A stretch of 50,628 nucleotides of DNA. Source: Hyphochytrium catenoides (Eukaryota; Protista; Hyphochytriomycota). Location of the stretch: positions 1 through 50,628 of the forward strand of contig FLMG01002915.1 in assembly GCA_900088475.1 (NCBI GenBank). The letters run 5' to 3'. The translations under genes and the position numbers were made by a program. Below, in pieces: positions 11,187-23,394 of the stretch (position 1 is its first letter; the number at the start of each line of letters is the position of its first letter). The notes under the pieces were generated by a model. That model saw only the letters and a list, made by a program, of their open reading frames with translations, did not search any database and was not told the DNA's origin.

Positions 11187-12898
11187 TCATGCAATTTTTT
11201 CTTTCGCTGTCCTCCGTCTGATCAGGGCAACCAGCTGTTTCTTGAGGGCTTGTTCCTCTGAAAGAAGCAACATCATGAAGACCAGAAAGAGTGCAGCTCC
11301 AATGCTGACGTGTTGCAAGTGCCCCAGTAAGGGTGAAGCCAGAGTCACACGTTGCGATGACCATAGTGTGAGAATGTAAGCACTCACTAGGCAACACAAA
11401 GGTTTAGGTCCCGGTAGGGCCTCAGGTATGCTAAAGCCATTTTCTCGGTCCTCAAGGAAGAAGTTCCGTATGAAGATCAGACAATAACTAATCCGTAGTG
11501 CCATGTTGATGCAATTGGCAATAATGAAGCCTGCCACCCCATACTGGTATTGTCTCACTAGGATTGTTGCAACAAGCGCATATATCCCGAAAAATACTGG
11601 CAGAAAGTAGTTAAGCCGTATCAGGTACCGTTTAGGAGCCACGGTGTAGACGAACGCCTCGCACATCCCGTTCCATGCCATGAAGAAGACGTAGGCGCAG
11701 TACCAAGAGAAGGCATGGGCAATGTCTGCCGCTCTCTCTTTGCTTCCGAAAAGAAGACGGACTAGGGTGGTGGTGTAGTTGGTGCCGAAACCAATGAAAA
11801 GCAAGCCCACAATAGAGACAAACTTCAGCCTGTTTCTTAGCAGTTCCCGCAATGCCAGTTTACCTGCCCGACCCATTCCATCGCTCTCGCTGAACAGTAC
11901 CCTGCTTGTCTCTTCAATGGGCTGGAACAGGACTCTAGCGGCGAGAGACCCATAGTTCGCCACTATAGCATATATTCCTTGATCTTCTACTGAAGAGATG
12001 GCAAAGAGGAGGAAGCTGTCCCCCTGCGTAAGGATGTGCTTGAAGACTGATTGCACAGCGAATGTCTGGACAAGGTGAAACACCCAGCCCTCGACGAAGG
12101 GCTCCTGCGTTCCGGTATTTCCTGAAAGCCGGGGAAGGAGCTGCTTGATGGAGGACGCAATTGATGGATGCTGACTTTGGGAGTTGTTACTGGAGTCTCT
12201 CAGGAAGAATACGAGGTAGCATAACAAGATGACTACTGAGTTGGCTAGCTGGGCAAGACCAAATCCTAAAACTCCCAAGCGGAGCTGTACTGCCAGAAGA
12301 TAGATGAGCGTAGAGCGAGTGATGATTGCCGCTCCTTCCGCAGTCGCACGAACTCCAAAGTTCAGTGAGCTCTGAGCCAAAACAAACATCGGCTCCGCCA
12401 GCCCTTCGACGACAGCCGACAGGCAGTAAAGGGTCACTCCTGTGGTATAGCCCTCCAACGACTCGTGAACGTAGAAGTGAAAGCTAACCCACATGCCGCT
12501 GGCTAATACCAGACAGACTGGAAAAGACATCCAAGCTGCGTTCACCAATTGTTGCATCTTGATGCTGCTATTAGCTTGCTCCTCATTGTGTGCTAGCCGA
12601 AATCCTGGCCGTTTAGCTCTGAGAAGGGCCAATCGAAATGGTTCCTTGGATAGGAAGACAATGGTGGAAAGGATAATCCCTTCCAATTGAACAGTGCAGA
12701 AGCCAAGGACGGTGATAGGAACCTTGGTGACGACGAGCTGGTTCAGGACAAAAGTAAGCACCTTCTGCAGAACCGTTAGACACAGCAAGTATGTGGTCCC
12801 CCTCACTGCANNNNNNNNNNNNNNNNNNNNNNNNNNNNNNNNNNNNNNNNNNNNNNNNNNNNNNNNNNTAAGCTCTCTGATGCCATTGAACCTGGCAT
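11187..12898 (-). CDS. RFT1: RFT1, ER Man5GlcNAc2-PP-dolichol translocation protein (MOP superfamily); 5' end crosses an assembly gap
   Basis: Uninterrupted 539-codon multi-TM ORF with RFT1 motifs TFVLNQ, FLSKEPFRLA, EGLAEP, QSVFKHILTQGD, QGIYAIVANYGSLAARVLFQPIEE, NGMCEAFV, GFIIANCINMALRI. The likely ATG (12898 or 12886) lies upstream of the N gap, so frame across the gap cannot be checked. Confidence 0.95.
12811..12868. other. Assembly gap
   Basis: Run of N. Confidence 1.
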
Positions 12899-13697
12899 GG
12901 CACCTTTACCATCACTGCTGCATTCAGGTTTGATATACTCACTGCCTATACTCCGAGCCATCGCGCGCTAACACTTTACACTCTACTAATCCTGCAGAAT
13001 CTATGATCAAACGTTATAAAGCCATGCTGCCGCTAGTCCTCATCTCGCACTTTTACTGCTGCGGTGGAGCGCCCGTCAAACGTCAAAGACAGGTTCATAA
13101 GTTCTTCGATGATGGGTGATGCGGAAAGTCGTGGTCTCTCATCCCTCAATCAAACAAAAAAACGTCACCGCGAGTCGCTAACGCCTAATCTTGTAACAAC
13201 ACTTGACACTGAGAATCCCGAGCGATCCATAGCCGCGTCTCGACTGAGAGCTCGATCTCCGTGCAGCAGTGCCGCGCAGTAGAACTATAGAACTATGAAG
13301 ATATAAACCTTGAAACAAACTCACAACCAAAGACAGCGTCGGACAGTGTCGGTCTCTCAAGTTGGAAAGGCTTTCAAAGTTCATTTGCGTTTTCGCCTGA
13401 GCAAATCTTGCGCGACCTGGGGGCGATTCAAGAAAGGTTTGAGGGGATATTCGAAGGGACTTATAAACAACGTAAATAAATGGTCTGACAAGCTCCGCGG
13501 CAAAATCTAGCGCATATACCAGTGTCTTTCTTGATCATCATCCACCGATGGGCCAGTCTGCAGAGCTTTAGATCCTCGGAAAAAGCAATTTTCAGTGAAA
13601 TCTGCCTTTCTCTATCGGTAAACTTGATGCTAGTGCTAGGTCTGTAAGCAGAATCTCGTATAGAACTGGTATTAGCTAAGGTGCAGAGACTTGGGCC
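12899..13697. promoter_or_regulatory. Divergent promoter region shared by RFT1 and MER3
   Basis: About 800 bp between head-to-head starts. An E2F-type TTTGCCGC lies on the minus strand at 13497-13504. Confidence 0.45.
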
Positions 13698-16600
13698 ATG
13701 CAAGACCGAGAGGACTATATCTCGATGCCCGACTTCGACCTCCTCGATGCAGCTGGAGGATCTCTTGAACATCAGTTGGAGCAGTCCCATGGTCATACAG
13801 ATTCCAGTTGGAGGTCCAATGAAGGAGGATACATTCCCTCTGCACCATCACCAACAACATCGGCCCTCATGGCTACTTGTGAGGCGGATGATCATCCAAG
13901 GGGAGACAGACTTCCTCCAGAACTTTCGCGAGCTCCTTTCGCCAAGTGCTTCGAACATTTACGTGAGCTAAACAGTGTTCAGCAACAGATTTTCCCGACT
14001 GTCTATAGGACTGACGCGAATATGATGGTCTGTGCACCGACCGGCTCCGGCAAGACGCTCATCTTGGAGTTTGCCCTTATACGGGAGATTCAAAGGCAAT
14101 TTTGTTCAGGAGGAGAATCACCCCGTCCTACTGGTGTAGAGAAGGCTGTCTATATAGCCCCGCTCAAGGCAATCATTCAAGAAAGGTTTGACTAGCGAAA
14201 ATGGATTTTGGTATAATAGGTCTCATAGCCCAGGTGTGCAGGGTGCATGACTGGCAAGCGCGTTTCGGGCCTCTCGGCATTCGAATGGTAGAGCTATCTG
14301 GTGACATCGCATCTCTACAGCCACATGAGCTAGATGAAGCTGACGTTATCCTAGCTACACCGGAGAAGGTATGTTACTCGCTACGAAGAGTACGGGCTAC
14401 CGTGAAGGGCTTAAAACACCCATTCTTCGTTATACCTGCATCTTACCTTATTTCCTCAACAGTGGGACGCTCTATCAAGGCAACAGGATAAGAAGGTCCT
14501 ACCTGCCTCCATGGTTGTCATGACCCTCGCCTCATGTCTAAATATTTCAAAACATATTCGAGCTACAGGGCATTCTGGGTAGTGTCAAGCTACTCCTTGT
14601 GGATGAGGTACACTCAATCCAGGATGGAACGCGAGGTGCAGTTTTGGAGGCCATAATATGCAGGATGAAGTGCCTTTCAGAGAGATATAAGAAGACTTCA
14701 GCCGAAGACCCCCTACCCATTTCTAGGATGTAAGCACTAGCTCTCTGATACTTGTGGGGAACAAGCTTCTTAATCCCTACTACCTTCGCCAGGAGGGTCA
14801 TAGCGCTATCTGCCACCGCGCCTAACGCTGACGTCGTAGGGAGGTGGCTCGGATGTCCGGAAGCCTCAATATTTAAGGTGGTACTTCCACTATCACCACC
14901 ACACCACTCCTAGCAGTAACCTTGTCGTCACCTGCGTCGTCAGTTTGGTGCTGGAAGTCGCCCCGTTCCACTCAGGATTCATATTCACGGATATTGGGCA
15001 AAAGGCAATCACTTTCTTTTCGAAAGGAAAGTTTGTAAGTCCTAGCACTTGGAAGGGGTCTTCCAGCCATAATTTCAATTCACTACGTTACAGAGGTTTG
15101 GATAGCAAAGTGCTGCCTGTCATCGACAGGTATTGGAAGAGGAAGCCAGTTCTTATCTTCTGCTCGTCTAGAAAATCCACCGTACAATTGGCAAAGTAAG
15201 CTTCCATTTATTTGCCAGGTTTCCCCGGAGACTAAGGTAGACCTGACTCTTGCATGCTTCCTATACCACGGGTTCATCTCTCTTTAGCTTGATAGCCCAG
15301 CAGACGAATGGATCACTGATCAGCTGCGAGGAGCAGCTTACAACCCTGCGTCGTCATAGCGTTAAGGTAGGCAACGCGTTGATTGATTATCAAGACAACC
15401 AAGTCTTCCCGCGTTTATAAATAGCAACCTCGATACAGCTATCTCAGACAAGTAAACCGCTATCGGAGGCGCTTCTTAACGGAGTCGGCTTCCATCACGC
15501 CGGCCTATCTGTTGAGGAACGTCATGAAGTCGAAGCAGCGTTCTGTTCAGCCAACCTCCCTGTTCTCTGGTAGGTATATCCGAACCCAATTAGCTCGTCT
15601 TCCCTTGTCGACCTTAAAGTGACAGCTCCTCTGACCGATATCTACTAGTTCCACGTCATCCCTAGCTCTTGGCGTAAATTTGCCATGTCATTTGGTGATT
15701 GTGAAAGGGACGAAGATATATTCAGAGAACGGATACAAGGACTACGAGTGGTCAAAGTATGGCGGCTGATGCGACTAACACGAGGCGACGGAGAAGTCGA
15801 TTCTAACAGTTCATCATTGTTATTTCTGTCTTATCTGCCTTCCTCCAGCATAGTTCAGATGATAGGTAGACCATGTGCCCCCTCTTGTGCAGTGCTGAGC
15901 TCATGACAATCTGTTGCGGTGTAAGGTCGTGCCGGACGGCCAGGGTTCGACACTGAGGGGGTCGCTGTTATCATGACTGAAGAAAAGTGCAAGGCTCGAT
16001 ACGAGGAGCTAACAAGGTATGCCGTACCCAGACTTCTTTGAGCTTGGGTTCGGTGACAGTACAGCTAATTGGACGACTCCTTCCATCGTTAGTTCGTCAA
16101 GTTCACAGCCGCATGTCTACAGCAACCTGAAGGCCAGACTTATTGAGGTTATCAACAGCGAGATAGTAGTGGGGACGGTAAACCTCTGCCTCTTCCAACC
16201 TTCATATCGTTGGCTACCCCCTTACCTAAAACTTCTTGTCGTATTCTATACCAGATTTGCGATACCATCTCGTGTCAACAATGGGCAAAGGTCTGCCGCT
16301 ATAAAGTGCGAGCGGAAATGGCAGGGACTAACTTGCAGTTTTGTGACTGCAAAGCAAACGTTTCTCTTTCACCAGCAGGTTGATGACAATGCACAAGCTA
16401 AGGCGACACAGGACGAGACCGAGATCCACTCAAAGATAGCAGATTTCCACTCTCAGTTCTATGATGCCATTAATGAGCTTGTAAAGCACAGACTTGCGGA
16501 CAAAAAAGACACTGCTATCAGGCCTCTCCCGGCTGGTGTAGTGATGTCGCGCTATCACATCCGCTTTGCAACAATGACACAACTTCTTAGCCTATCTGCC

Positions 16601-19531
16601 ACCTCCGGTACACCAACCTCTTGGCACTGCCTCTATCTTGATACCAAGACTTCTGATTGCGTCTTGTCGTGGGTTTTGCAGGTATTGAGGAGATCCTTCG
16701 TCTGCTCTCGTCAGCTGAGGAGCTTCAACGCCCTTTGCGCCGCCAGGAGAAGGTGATGCTGAACACGTTTAATAAGTCAAAGGCGAGATTCCCTTTGAAG
16801 AAAAAAAAGGGCTTTGCGAAAGTGCAAGATGCCACGGGGAAATGTACGTCAGCTTACTGATTATCAGGAAGTGAGCTATCGACCATTCACTCGTTCTAAC
16901 CCCGCGTGTATGGCTATCAACTTTTGTTCTCCTACTCTCAGGCTTTCTTTTGTTGCAGGTCGCTTTATCCGGCACTAAGTTGGACGACTGGTCGTTGACG
17001 AACGAAGCAAGAGGGAATCTTGAGCCAGCAGAGAAGATATGCAAGGCCATGATAGATCTCTTTCAACAAGTAAGTAATATGCTCGCGTCTAGAAGCTGCG
17101 CTATCCTTCTGATGCCAAGAGTCTTTGTTCTGATTAGCGATCATATGGAGCAGCCCTGGTTTCAGCGATTCAATCAAGAAAGATGATGGCGAGTCAGATG
17201 TGGTGGGACTCTAGAGACTGTTTGCTGCGGCAGTAAGTCGCAGTTATTCTTCACTGGAAGAGGTAGCCGGCAAACTAACTTTACGTATGAGATTCGAGGG
17301 TGTAGGTCAAGTCCTGTGTGAACGACTCAAGGCGTCAAACATTACCAGCTACGAAAATCTCCTTCACACTCCAGCCCATCTTGTTGACGTCGCAAGTGGC
17401 AGACAAAGCCCCTTCGGTCTCAACCTTATCAAGGCGGTAGCTAATATGACAGGGAACCTACTTAGCATTTTCACCCAAGAAGTACGGTGGCGCACCGTAA
17501 GGTCGCCTGCTACGCAGTCTTTAAGGTACGAGTTCACGGTGCCTGTGAGACAACGTGGCCCATCTACCTGTCAGAAGCTTTTGCGAATATCACATGGAGA
17601 TCAGCACCAAAATGAAGTGTCCGTCAAGAAGGGCCAGTACTATTTCGTGGCGTTGTCAACGGCCACAGCAAAGCTTTTGCATATTCAGACAATTAGGGCA
17701 GAGGGCATCGTGTGCTTTCGTGTAGACAACAAGGATTTGCAGAAGCCACCTCCTTCTGGAGGTTTTGTCAACAGGAACGGAGGCACGGTAGCCCTTTATC
17801 TTCTCAACAGGGATCTTGTGGGCGCTGATATGGAACACCAGCTTCAAGTTGGTTCCATAGACGAAGCACACCAAGAAGAAGAGGTTCCGATAACAGCAAA
17901 GGATAGAAAGCTCAACCGACGGGCACGCTTATCCTCATGTAAAGACGAGAACACTTCAACATCATCGCCCGATCACGCCATTTTCCGTGGTGAGCAACCC
18001 TCCTGCGACTTGGGAATGTCGGCGGGCCAGTCACCATGCTCGTCAGCAATATTTTCCATGGAGTACCGACAGCAACCTTATCTCCCCACAACGCCTTCTG
18101 TGTCTCCGCAACCTGGAGGAAGGAAGCTCGAGTTTACCGCGAATGATGAACGCCAACTATCAATGGTACCCAAAGACCCTCCCAAAGCATCAAACAATAT
18201 GAGCCGTGGGGGTTCCGAGGATAAAGATTTACTTCAACCGCCGAATCGAAGACTGATCAGCGGTGATCATAAATATGAAAAGATGTCTACCCAGCTGTCG
18301 AAGAGACGCAAAAGTTCCGAGCCGTGGCCCCTTGACTCCAGGTAAGTACAGCTATGGCAATAGATAGTTATAGCGTCCTGGCACCGTAGACTGAGTCCTG
18401 GTCTTTAGCTCCACCTGCCAGGCTAGCGAGCTGGGAAGCCAGCGCCGTTCAGGTTGTCTCCGACAAATGCTGATAGGTAAAGGAAGTTCCCACGAGCGCA
18501 TTGCAGAAGCCAAGGGCAGTCCTATCGATAGCAGCAGCATGGTCGCCTCTGCTTCTGTGGAGTTTGCACGGGCAAGGTTCAACGTGTTGTACCAAGGACA
18601 CCCATCAGTCCAAGCTGCTTCTCTCATCCTTAGCAGGCCACGAGTAAGGGCTAAGGTTGCGGGACATGCCCGTATAGGGCTTGTTGATATGGCAAAAAAA
18701 GAAGCTGCTGTGCGTCAGCCCTCCTCGCCAAAGCAGAGTGCACCATGGGTAACGTTACCTCTTCCTACATCCATCCTTTGTTCTAAAGAAGCTCTCCGCT
18801 TAACGCAGGAAGAATATGAACGCTGTGGCGAACACGGTTCTCGAGGTGATCATGATGACCACAGAAGTCAGGCAATAGAAACCTTTTCTAAGTGTCTCAA
18901 GAGGTATGCTTGCCCTCGGTCGGCAAAAAGCCCAGTTCTACCAGACGACAGCCGCTGTACGGAGAGACCGACGGGGTTAAGCAGGACGCAAGAGACCACA
19001 GCAGCGATGAAAGAGCAAACGCTCATGTGGGCGACGCCTTTCGACTTCCACGCATCTCCAGCAAGCCAGCATCCAGATGGTAGCGGATTTTGGCGACATG
19101 GGTATTTTGTAGGAGACAGCACAGTAAGCACGAGGTCATTTGGCTCTGATCGGCATTGGAAAGCGCCCCCTGTTCATGCGCGTCTGCCGGGCTCTCTTCG
19201 TGCTTCTGAAGTGTTACCAAGTCAAGCAGCGGACGCGAGAGTATCCTCTTCAGAGACAACCTCTCTCCGCACGGGAGAAATGGCGCCACCTACCCATCTC
19301 TCTGAATATCAGCCAGTGCCCCGTCGATCGTTTAATCGGAATTCGCATCTATCGCCTGACCTCTCCCGGGCAATAGCTTGTGACACATTGGAAGAGCTCA
19401 GGACAAGGCAAGCACCCCTGAGAGAGAACAGTCAAATTGCAGGCGGATATGAAAAACCGATTTCCATTCGTCTGGCGGCCTCATTGGACACAAGAAGCAT
19501 GGAATCAGCCTTCGAAGAGGCATTCTTCTAG
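13698..19531 (+). CDS. MER3: Meiotic crossover helicase MER3/HFM1 (Ski2-like DExH + Sec63 domain), ~18 exons, long disordered C-tail
   Basis: Spliced motifs: LNSVQ, CAPTGSGKT, YIAPLKA, ELSGD, ATPEKWD, LLLVDEVH..RGAVLEAII, ALSAT, FGAGSRPVPL..GY..NHFLFE, KPVLIFCSSRK, GVGFHHAGL, STSSLALGVNLP, QMIGRAGRPGFD, EVINSEI, and Sec63-like LRRQEK..LLLQ..QMWW..LRQFEGVG. It has one helicase cassette, unlike Brr2/ASCC3. The last exon ends FEEAFF* at 19531. Confidence 0.88.

Positions 19532-20160: not shown

Positions 20161-23394
<3,234 letters not shown>

Follow-up and report, generated by a model that had tools for sequence, protein, structure and literature searches.

In Saccharomyces cerevisiae the MER3 intron carries a deviant GUAGUA donor together with the Mer1 enhancer AYACCCUY within 25 nt, and it stays unspliced without Mer1 and Nam8 (PMC3082912). 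Donors starting with GA are known from other genes: in FGFR1-3 exon 10 the GA site is used in dependence on a canonical GT at a distance of 6 nt, and in ITPR1 a GA-AG intron was verified by reverse transcription-polymerase chain reaction (PMC4176328 and PMC7072748, citing Brackenridge 2003). AG/GAA donors are numerous in Oikopleura and Eurytemora (PMC4176328, PMC7072748). Here we describe an intron in a MER3/HFM1-like helicase gene of Hyphochytrium catenoides, located on contig FLMG01002915.1 of assembly GCA_900088475.1, which was analyzed over its whole length of 50,628 nucleotides (the window; all positions refer to its forward strand). As judged by homology, the exon boundary in this gene coincides with a GA donor, close to which a GT decoy lies out of frame, and a working intron, a regulated intron or a fresh null allele are the candidate explanations.

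The locus resembles the FGFR1-3 and ITPR1 cases in combining a putative GA donor, otherwise consensus, with a canonical GT a few bases off and an AG acceptor. In FGFR, however, the GT is found 6 nt upstream and the frame is kept in both products, whereas here it lies 8 nt downstream and its product would contain a stop. The GA donors of Oikopleura and Eurytemora have the same flanks as the AAG/GAAAGT described below, with AG upstream and A at position +3 (PMC7072748). With the yeast MER3 intron our locus shares the gene family and an intron that in H. catenoides, too, would limit protein production, but the weak GUAGUA leaves the yeast intron unspliced whereas a perfect GUAAGU would here cause mis-splicing to a stop. 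Poison splicing coupled to nonsense-mediated decay (NMD) is similar in that use of a competing site leads to a premature stop long before the last exon junction; in the known cases the two sites are canonical and their isoforms have both been observed, whereas in H. catenoides the productive site would be non-canonical and the isoforms are predicted.

Identity and Model of the Helicase Gene

By sequence comparison the gene is a MER3/HFM1-like, single-cassette Ski2-like helicase closest to plant MER3/RCK, for which a role in meiotic crossover is predicted. A preliminary description of the locus, made from the bases alone, had already named it MER3, and this identity is borne out by the intact helicase motifs I-VI in the exon translations (GSGKT, DEVH, SAT, LIFCSSRK, TSSLALGVNLP, QMIGRAGRP), by two exons matching Pfam DEAD and by the alignment scores. 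The gene model was assembled from GT-AG introns that keep the frame from one conserved exon anchor to the next, and its core comprises 16 exons from the ATG at 13698 to 16809, with 666 codons and no stop. End-to-end alignment of this core with plant MER3/RCK (DExH17, ROCK-N-ROLLERS) gives 37-39% identity and 380-397 bits, compared with at most 307 bits to the cassettes of Brr2/ASCC3 (148 two-cassette relatives). The MER3 comparison set consists of plant orthologues only, as the profile search listed plant MER3 alone, and the assignment is made by alignment scores and not by a tree. Seven meiosis-specific genes have been reported as present and expressed in H. catenoides, and MER3 is not in that list (PMC5795050).

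A protein search of the whole library with exon 1 returned mainly two-cassette proteins of the Brr2/ASCC3 type, and P0111 and P0124 were the only MER3-like single-cassette proteins among them. P0111 is the Salix homologue of plant MER3/RCK, and its relatives are named DExH17, ROCK-N-ROLLERS, HFM1 or MER3-like at the source. A single helicase cassette is present within 13.7-18.3 kb. The exons align to positions 14-742 of the MER3 profile, including the GIG...PFG stretch (28% identity), and there is a weak alignment at 17281-17418 to the helix-hairpin-helix stretch that is typical of MER3. Searches of the single exons, one by one, gave no match to Pfam Sec63, sequence searches of the PDB found no Mer3/HFM1 structure and an Rfam search of the window gave no match.

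Homology Places the Exon Boundary at a GA Donor

The exon upstream of the intron is read in frame 1 (...NHFLFERKV; ...QFGAGSRPVPLRIHIHGYWAKGNHFLFERKV...) and the downstream exon in frame 2 (GLDSKVLPV...; GLDSKVLPVIDRYWKRKPVLIFCSSRKSTVQLAK), while the sequence between them is GAAAG/GAAAGTTT/GTAAGTCCTAG...TTCACTACGTTACAG/AG/GTTTGG. All bases and coordinates quoted for this region in the preliminary description are correct (GAAAGT at 15027, GTTTGT at 15031, GTAAGT at 15035-15040, CAG at 15091-15093, GAG at 15093-15095). The same is true for the predicted consequences of the canonical route, which had been regarded as a poison splice: joining 15034 to 15094 removes 59 nt and gives the product ...FLFERKV followed by a TAG stop at the junction, with the downstream sequence out of frame, and retention of the intron leads to the TAG at 15043-15045, as was stated there.

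We paired all GT, GC, GA and AT donors exhaustively with the AG acceptors and checked which combinations keep the frame. Two of them, the GA at 15027 with the CAG ending at 15093 (FLFERGLDSKV) and the GT at 15035 with the GAG ending at 15095 (two additional residues, FLFERKVCLDSKV), had been recognized before. They are not the only plausible ones, as had been assumed, and three canonical in-frame pairs have to be added: the GT at 15039 (GTCCTA) with the CAG at 15093, which removes 55 nt and gives FLFERKVCKGLDSKV, the GTAAGT at 15035 with an AAG at 15110, and the GT at 15039 with a TAG at 15105. A U12-type intron was ruled out, as there is no ATATCC or GTATCC donor, and so were AT-AC and GC donors, which would delete the conserved NHFLFE. 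Inspection by eye for a nested, stwintron-like arrangement revealed no internal GT..AG unit that recreates a donor.

Comparison with MER3 relatives indicates that 15026^15094 (last and first exon base), with GA-AG ends, is the true junction. It is the sole junction that aligns without a gap to the Salix MER3 protein P0111, with FLFERGLDSKV facing FLFEKRLENYI (FLFERGLDSKVLPVIDRYWKRKPVLIFC and FLFEKRLENYIFDILMHYSRGKSALVFC, respectively), and gap-free alignment to plant MER3 is seen at most other junctions of the gene as well. Scored against a profile of 31 plant MER3 proteins, the GA junction (15027 to 15093) reached 441.2 bits, followed by GT 15035-GAG 15095 with 436.9, GT 15039-CAG 15093 with 435.1, a hypothetical ancestor with a single GAAAG with 434.6 and GT 15035-AAG 15110 with 433.6. 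The preference for the GA junction, originally derived from the MER3 spacing FLFEKRL, is supported by the zero gap and the best profile score. Furthermore, an intron of Salix MER3 sits 1 nt from the position of the GA junction (GAA AAG/GTATCT). In Salix brachista MER3 (L001 2785-3100) this phase-0 intron directly follows FLFEK and precedes a micro-exon for RLENYIF. The coordinates of all features are collected in Table 1.

Table 1. Position of the helicase gene and of the sequence elements at the intron in the 50,628-nucleotide window.
Feature	Position	Strand	Basis or remark
MER3/HFM1-like helicase gene	13698..18342	+	ATG at 13698; at least 17 modelled exons; provisional 3' end, with a GTAAGT donor at 18342
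Upstream exon (FGAGSRPVPLRIHIHGYWAKGNHFLFE + AG)	14944..15026	+	ends in AAG at the homology-defined boundary
Homology-defined intron, 67 nt, GA-AG ends	15027..15093	+	gap-free against plant MER3 and best profile score
Non-canonical donor GAAAGT after AAG	15027..15032	+	8/9 positions of the donor consensus; +2 alone differs (A for T)
Perfect GTAAGT donor, out-of-frame decoy	15035..15040	+	to CAG 15093 gives TAG; exon side TTT atypical for the gene
Weak donor GTCCTA overlapping GTAAGT	15039..15044	+	in frame with CAG 15093, four additional residues
Perfect 5-nt tandem repeat GAAAG GAAAG over the exon end	15022..15031	+	removal of one copy puts GTAAGT-CAG in frame
Likely branch site TTCAC	15079..15083	+	A at 15082, 11 nt to CAG and 13 nt to GAG (motif scan)
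Overlapping acceptors CAG (end 15093) and GAG (end 15095)	15091..15095	+	read from the bases
Downstream exon (A + GLDSKVLPVIDRYWKRKPVLIFCSSRKSTVQLA..) with helicase motif IV	15094..15195	+	alignment to MER3

Splice Sites Across the Gene and the Weak Canonical Alternatives

The 15 other modelled introns of the gene are all canonical GT-AG introns of 56-94 nt. On the intron side their donors vary (GTTTGA, GTCCTA, GTGGTA, GTCTGC, GTACAC and others), and on the exon side they are strict, with G at -1 in 12 of 15 and AAG/GT in 8 of 15, and their acceptors comprise nine CAG, three AAG, two TAG and one GAG. In a donor matrix made from these 15 donors, which is a small sample, AAG/GAAAGT scored 5.5 bits and thus, even with A at +2, lies between the lowest and the highest score of the real donors (5.0-12.0), whereas TTT/GTAAGT (1.6 bits) and TAA/GTCCTA (0.7 bits) score below every real donor because their exon sides are wrong. 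A motif scan of the 16 introns of the gene gave branch-to-acceptor distances of 11-25 nt.

The only GAG acceptor among the other introns belongs to the 59-nt intron at 17233-17291, which has a GTAAGT donor and a CTAAC branch site; the GAG is the first AG after CTAAC. This intron shows that the model requires a GAG acceptor in the MER3 gene. In the modelled intron at 16291-16354 with the weak donor AAG/GTCTGC, a CAG 7 nt past a perfect CTAAC must be skipped, and the junction required by homology (QQWAK/QTFLFHQ) uses an AAG 16 nt beyond it. Tandem in-frame acceptors are found at 14562-14568 (GAG and CAG, 6 nt apart) and at 14792-14795 (CAGGAG, 3 nt apart), which could give rise to small protein variants.

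Productive mRNA could also arise from the weak canonical sites of our intron, with GTAAGT at 15035 spliced to the GAG at 15095 or GTCCTA at 15039 spliced to the CAG at 15093. Both pairs keep the frame, and elsewhere in the gene model a GAG serves as acceptor (17291) and a GTCCTA as donor (14496). In addition, the corresponding segment comprises mostly 49-51 residues in the Brr2/ASCC3 superfamily but ranges from 48 to 73, so that small insertions would be tolerable and the longer products are not excluded by spacing alone. Yet a GAG is the weakest of acceptors when it stands beside a CAG, and the CAG comes first here, 11 nt past the likely branch site, a distance that is also found at 15287. 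The GTCCTA donor for its part overlaps the perfect GTAAGT and has the poor exon side already mentioned. Compared with the GA junction the two products lose 4-6 bits, and neither route explains why a near-consensus AAG/GAAAGT stands exactly at the gap-free position. We therefore consider it unlikely that the gene is served by these sites.

Confirmation of the Bases and Allelic State

Logan contigs of three DNA runs from one study were placed on positions 13200-19000, namely X1 from 2017, which may be the source of the assembly, and X2 and X3 from a second sample of 2011. Over 14656-15809 the contigs of all three runs (k-mer depth 421, 34 and 6.7, respectively) match the window exactly, with no substitution and no indel. 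An assembly or sequencing error at 15020-15100, which the preliminary description had listed as the first point to be checked, is practically excluded by the base-for-base agreement of three separately sequenced runs from two samples.

The contigs are also informative on the allelic state. At 13734-13871 two contigs of half depth (206 and 221) differ at seven sites, five of them synonymous and two not, and further allelic differences run up to 14655, where a heterozygous site breaks the contig; the robust haplotype single-nucleotide polymorphisms (SNPs) in exons add up to six synonymous and three non-synonymous ones. In contrast to this stretch, no heterozygous site was found in the run contigs between 14656 and 19000, a SNP-free tract of 4.3 kb that looks like loss of heterozygosity with its boundary inside the gene. 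X1 crosses the intron site in one unbroken contig of 6.7 kb at full diploid depth, which indicates that the intron state is homozygous. The DNA at the intron is thus real and homozygous.

A Possible GA-AG Intron in Competition With a GT Decoy

We tentatively prefer to interpret the site as a GA-AG intron that faces competition from an out-of-frame GT decoy, comparable to the FGFR and ITPR1 cases. The upstream exon would end at 15026, and 15027-15093 would be a 67-nt U2-type intron whose donor AAG/GAAAGU follows the consensus except for position +2. The perfect GUAAGU 8 bases downstream would be out of frame and its use would put a UAG at the junction, so that the decoy transcript would be non-productive and a likely target of NMD. 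Since the decoy product carries a stop, productive MER3 mRNA would need the GA site, and we infer that the spliceosome most likely uses it for at least part of the transcripts, the remainder presumably being wasted via the decoy.

In support of this interpretation, the rest of the gene looks maintained, with an open core of 666 codons, 15 canonical introns and an open reading frame (ORF) of 376 codons in the unconserved tail, and the exon SNPs given above (six synonymous, three non-synonymous) point the same way. Furthermore, a perfect GTAAGT is expected by chance within 10 nt in about 0.25% of cases (10 positions at 1/4096), and the motif occurs 13 times on the plus strand and twice on the minus strand of the window (12.4 expected per strand). 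The GTAAGT beside the GA site is therefore easier explained as a partner site than as a coincidence. In addition, GA-AG introns number around ten per genome where surveyed, and homozygous T>A alleles at +2 are rarer still. If the GA site is used, the locus would provide a clear example, from outside the animals and in a key meiotic gene, of a GA-AG intron accompanied by a tandem canonical site, and gene predictors restricted to GT and GC donors would mis-annotate MER3 as broken or truncated.

A number of points speak against a functional GA site and keep our preference for it tentative. As a rule, a donor with A in place of U at +2 is no longer spliced, and a strong cryptic GT in the vicinity is used instead. 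Each of the other 15 donors in the gene starts with GT, and a T>A substitution in AAG/GTAAGT or a 5-bp duplication would produce exactly the sequence of the proposed GA-AG intron. Vegetative growth does not require MER3, and for hyphochytrid cultures sexual recombination is documented by a single observation, made in another species (PMC5795050). The stretch at 16801-16958, discussed below, may pose a second frame problem. The search of public runs for the locus yielded no RNA run; besides the three DNA runs, all from one study, it returned three tiny runs without a match. Finally, the weights that we assign to the different interpretations rest partly on rough base-rate estimates.

A Young Lesion as Alternative

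The explanation that we rank second and regard as possible but somewhat less probable is a young homozygous lesion that leaves a frameshifted, stop-containing MER3, either as a null allele or as the first step towards a pseudogene. Two histories are conceivable. In the first, an original AAG/GTAAGT was hit by T>A at +2 (15028) and splicing moved to the cryptic GTAAGT; in the second, GAAAG was duplicated in tandem (5 bp), which made the exon before the original GTAAGT longer. Among the canonical pairs at the intron only GTAAGT-CAG is strong, and it yields TAG; all other donors of the gene are GT in a helicase that can be dispensed with in culture. The perfect repeat GAAAG GAAAG, of which dropping one copy restores the frame, is in line with the duplication (the background of such 5-nt tandem repeats in the window is 0.0017 per position), but the substitution accounts for it as well, as GAAAG/GTAAG differs from it at 15028 only. 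The SNP-free tract from 14656 to 19000, which follows a stretch with many SNPs, would agree with a loss of heterozygosity through which a new mutation could become homozygous. The locus also resembles known +2 donor mutations with a cryptic donor in that AAG/GAAAGT differs from a perfect donor by a single substitution and has a strong GT nearby, although in our case the mutation would have to be homozygous and very recent.

Each history has its own cost. The T>A substitution requires that a perfect GTAAGT pre-existed 8 nt inside the intron, which brings in the chance of about 0.25% given above. The duplication implies an ancestor one residue longer than its relatives, which scores 6.6 bits worse than the GA junction, and requires in addition an atypical TTT/GT donor and a GAAAGT that arose by chance. 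Against a lesion in general stands the absence of any other clear lesion in about 3.3 kb of coding sequence.

The one stretch that could change this picture is located at 16801-16958. For 16809-16958 the sole canonical in-frame model is a 137-nt intron at 16822-16958 (AAA/GTGCAA...CAG), which omits about 15 residues of the first Sec63 helix that relatives have. Upstream of it, a run of eight A at 16801-16808 (A8) is followed by an open stretch of 24 codons in frame 2, which leads to the strong donor GAA/GTGAGC at 16871. This donor matches the frame of the following exon only when the A8 is taken as A7, and it may hence mark a second lesion. The A7 reading scores 5 bits better than the canonical model against the superfamily profile, but inserts of equal length and random sequence did just as well in 19-34% of trials, so that a lesion at A8 is without sequence-specific support. 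The contigs of X1 and X2 both have A8 at 16801-16808 with no variation. The stretch may therefore be a second frame lesion or merely a divergent loop. If the intron does carry a lesion, the sequenced strain would have lost a helicase of crossover formation (ZMM pathway), which would bear on the ability to form class I crossovers in a lineage where sex is almost unobserved.

Little Indication of a Regulated Switch

The preliminary description had seen the intron as a convergent counterpart of the yeast system, a default-off switch that confines MER3 to meiosis. Spelled out, the GTAAGT-CAG poison transcript would be made in vegetative cells, and a factor of the sexual stage would redirect splicing to the GA donor or to the GAG acceptor. 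The anatomy permits such a switch, as the productive and the poison site would lie only 8 nt apart, and yeast does control MER3 by meiosis-specific splicing (PMC3082912). However, the analogy with Mer1 and Nam8 fails on those features that can be tested on the DNA: the enhancer AYACCCUY was not found in 14990-15130, the intron has a perfect GTAAGT instead of a deviant one, and the site that would be productive is GA. An additional regulator would be required, and the runs found for the locus include DNA runs only and no RNA run.

The end of the exon forms a near-palindrome at 15011-15032 (ACTTTCTTTTC/GAAAGGAAAGT), which could fold into a hairpin of 9 bp covering the exon end and the GA site, but with -8.6 kcal/mol (z = -1.7) the hairpin is not significant, as 6% of shuffled sequences are as stable. 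We consider a regulated switch of this kind very improbable. The chance that a stramenopile MER3 is gated by the choice between GA and a poison GUAAGU 8 nt apart, evolved independently of the Mer1 system of yeast, appears equally slim; if it should be true, meiotic splicing control would have been built a second time and on a non-canonical splice site.

We also searched for relatives in which the arrangement could be compared. A metagenome scan with exon 1 found no relative, the DNA pattern GAAAG, 0-10 nt, GTAAGT had no match in metagenomes, and a word search with the 376-residue tail ORF returned no match, not even the tail ORF itself.

Neighborhood of the Gene

The MER3 gene is followed, after about 2 kb and on the same strand, by a gene for a RecQ-type helicase (20338-20500 onward). 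Upstream of the MER3 gene, a run of N at about 12810-12870 represents an assembly gap (96 N in the window).

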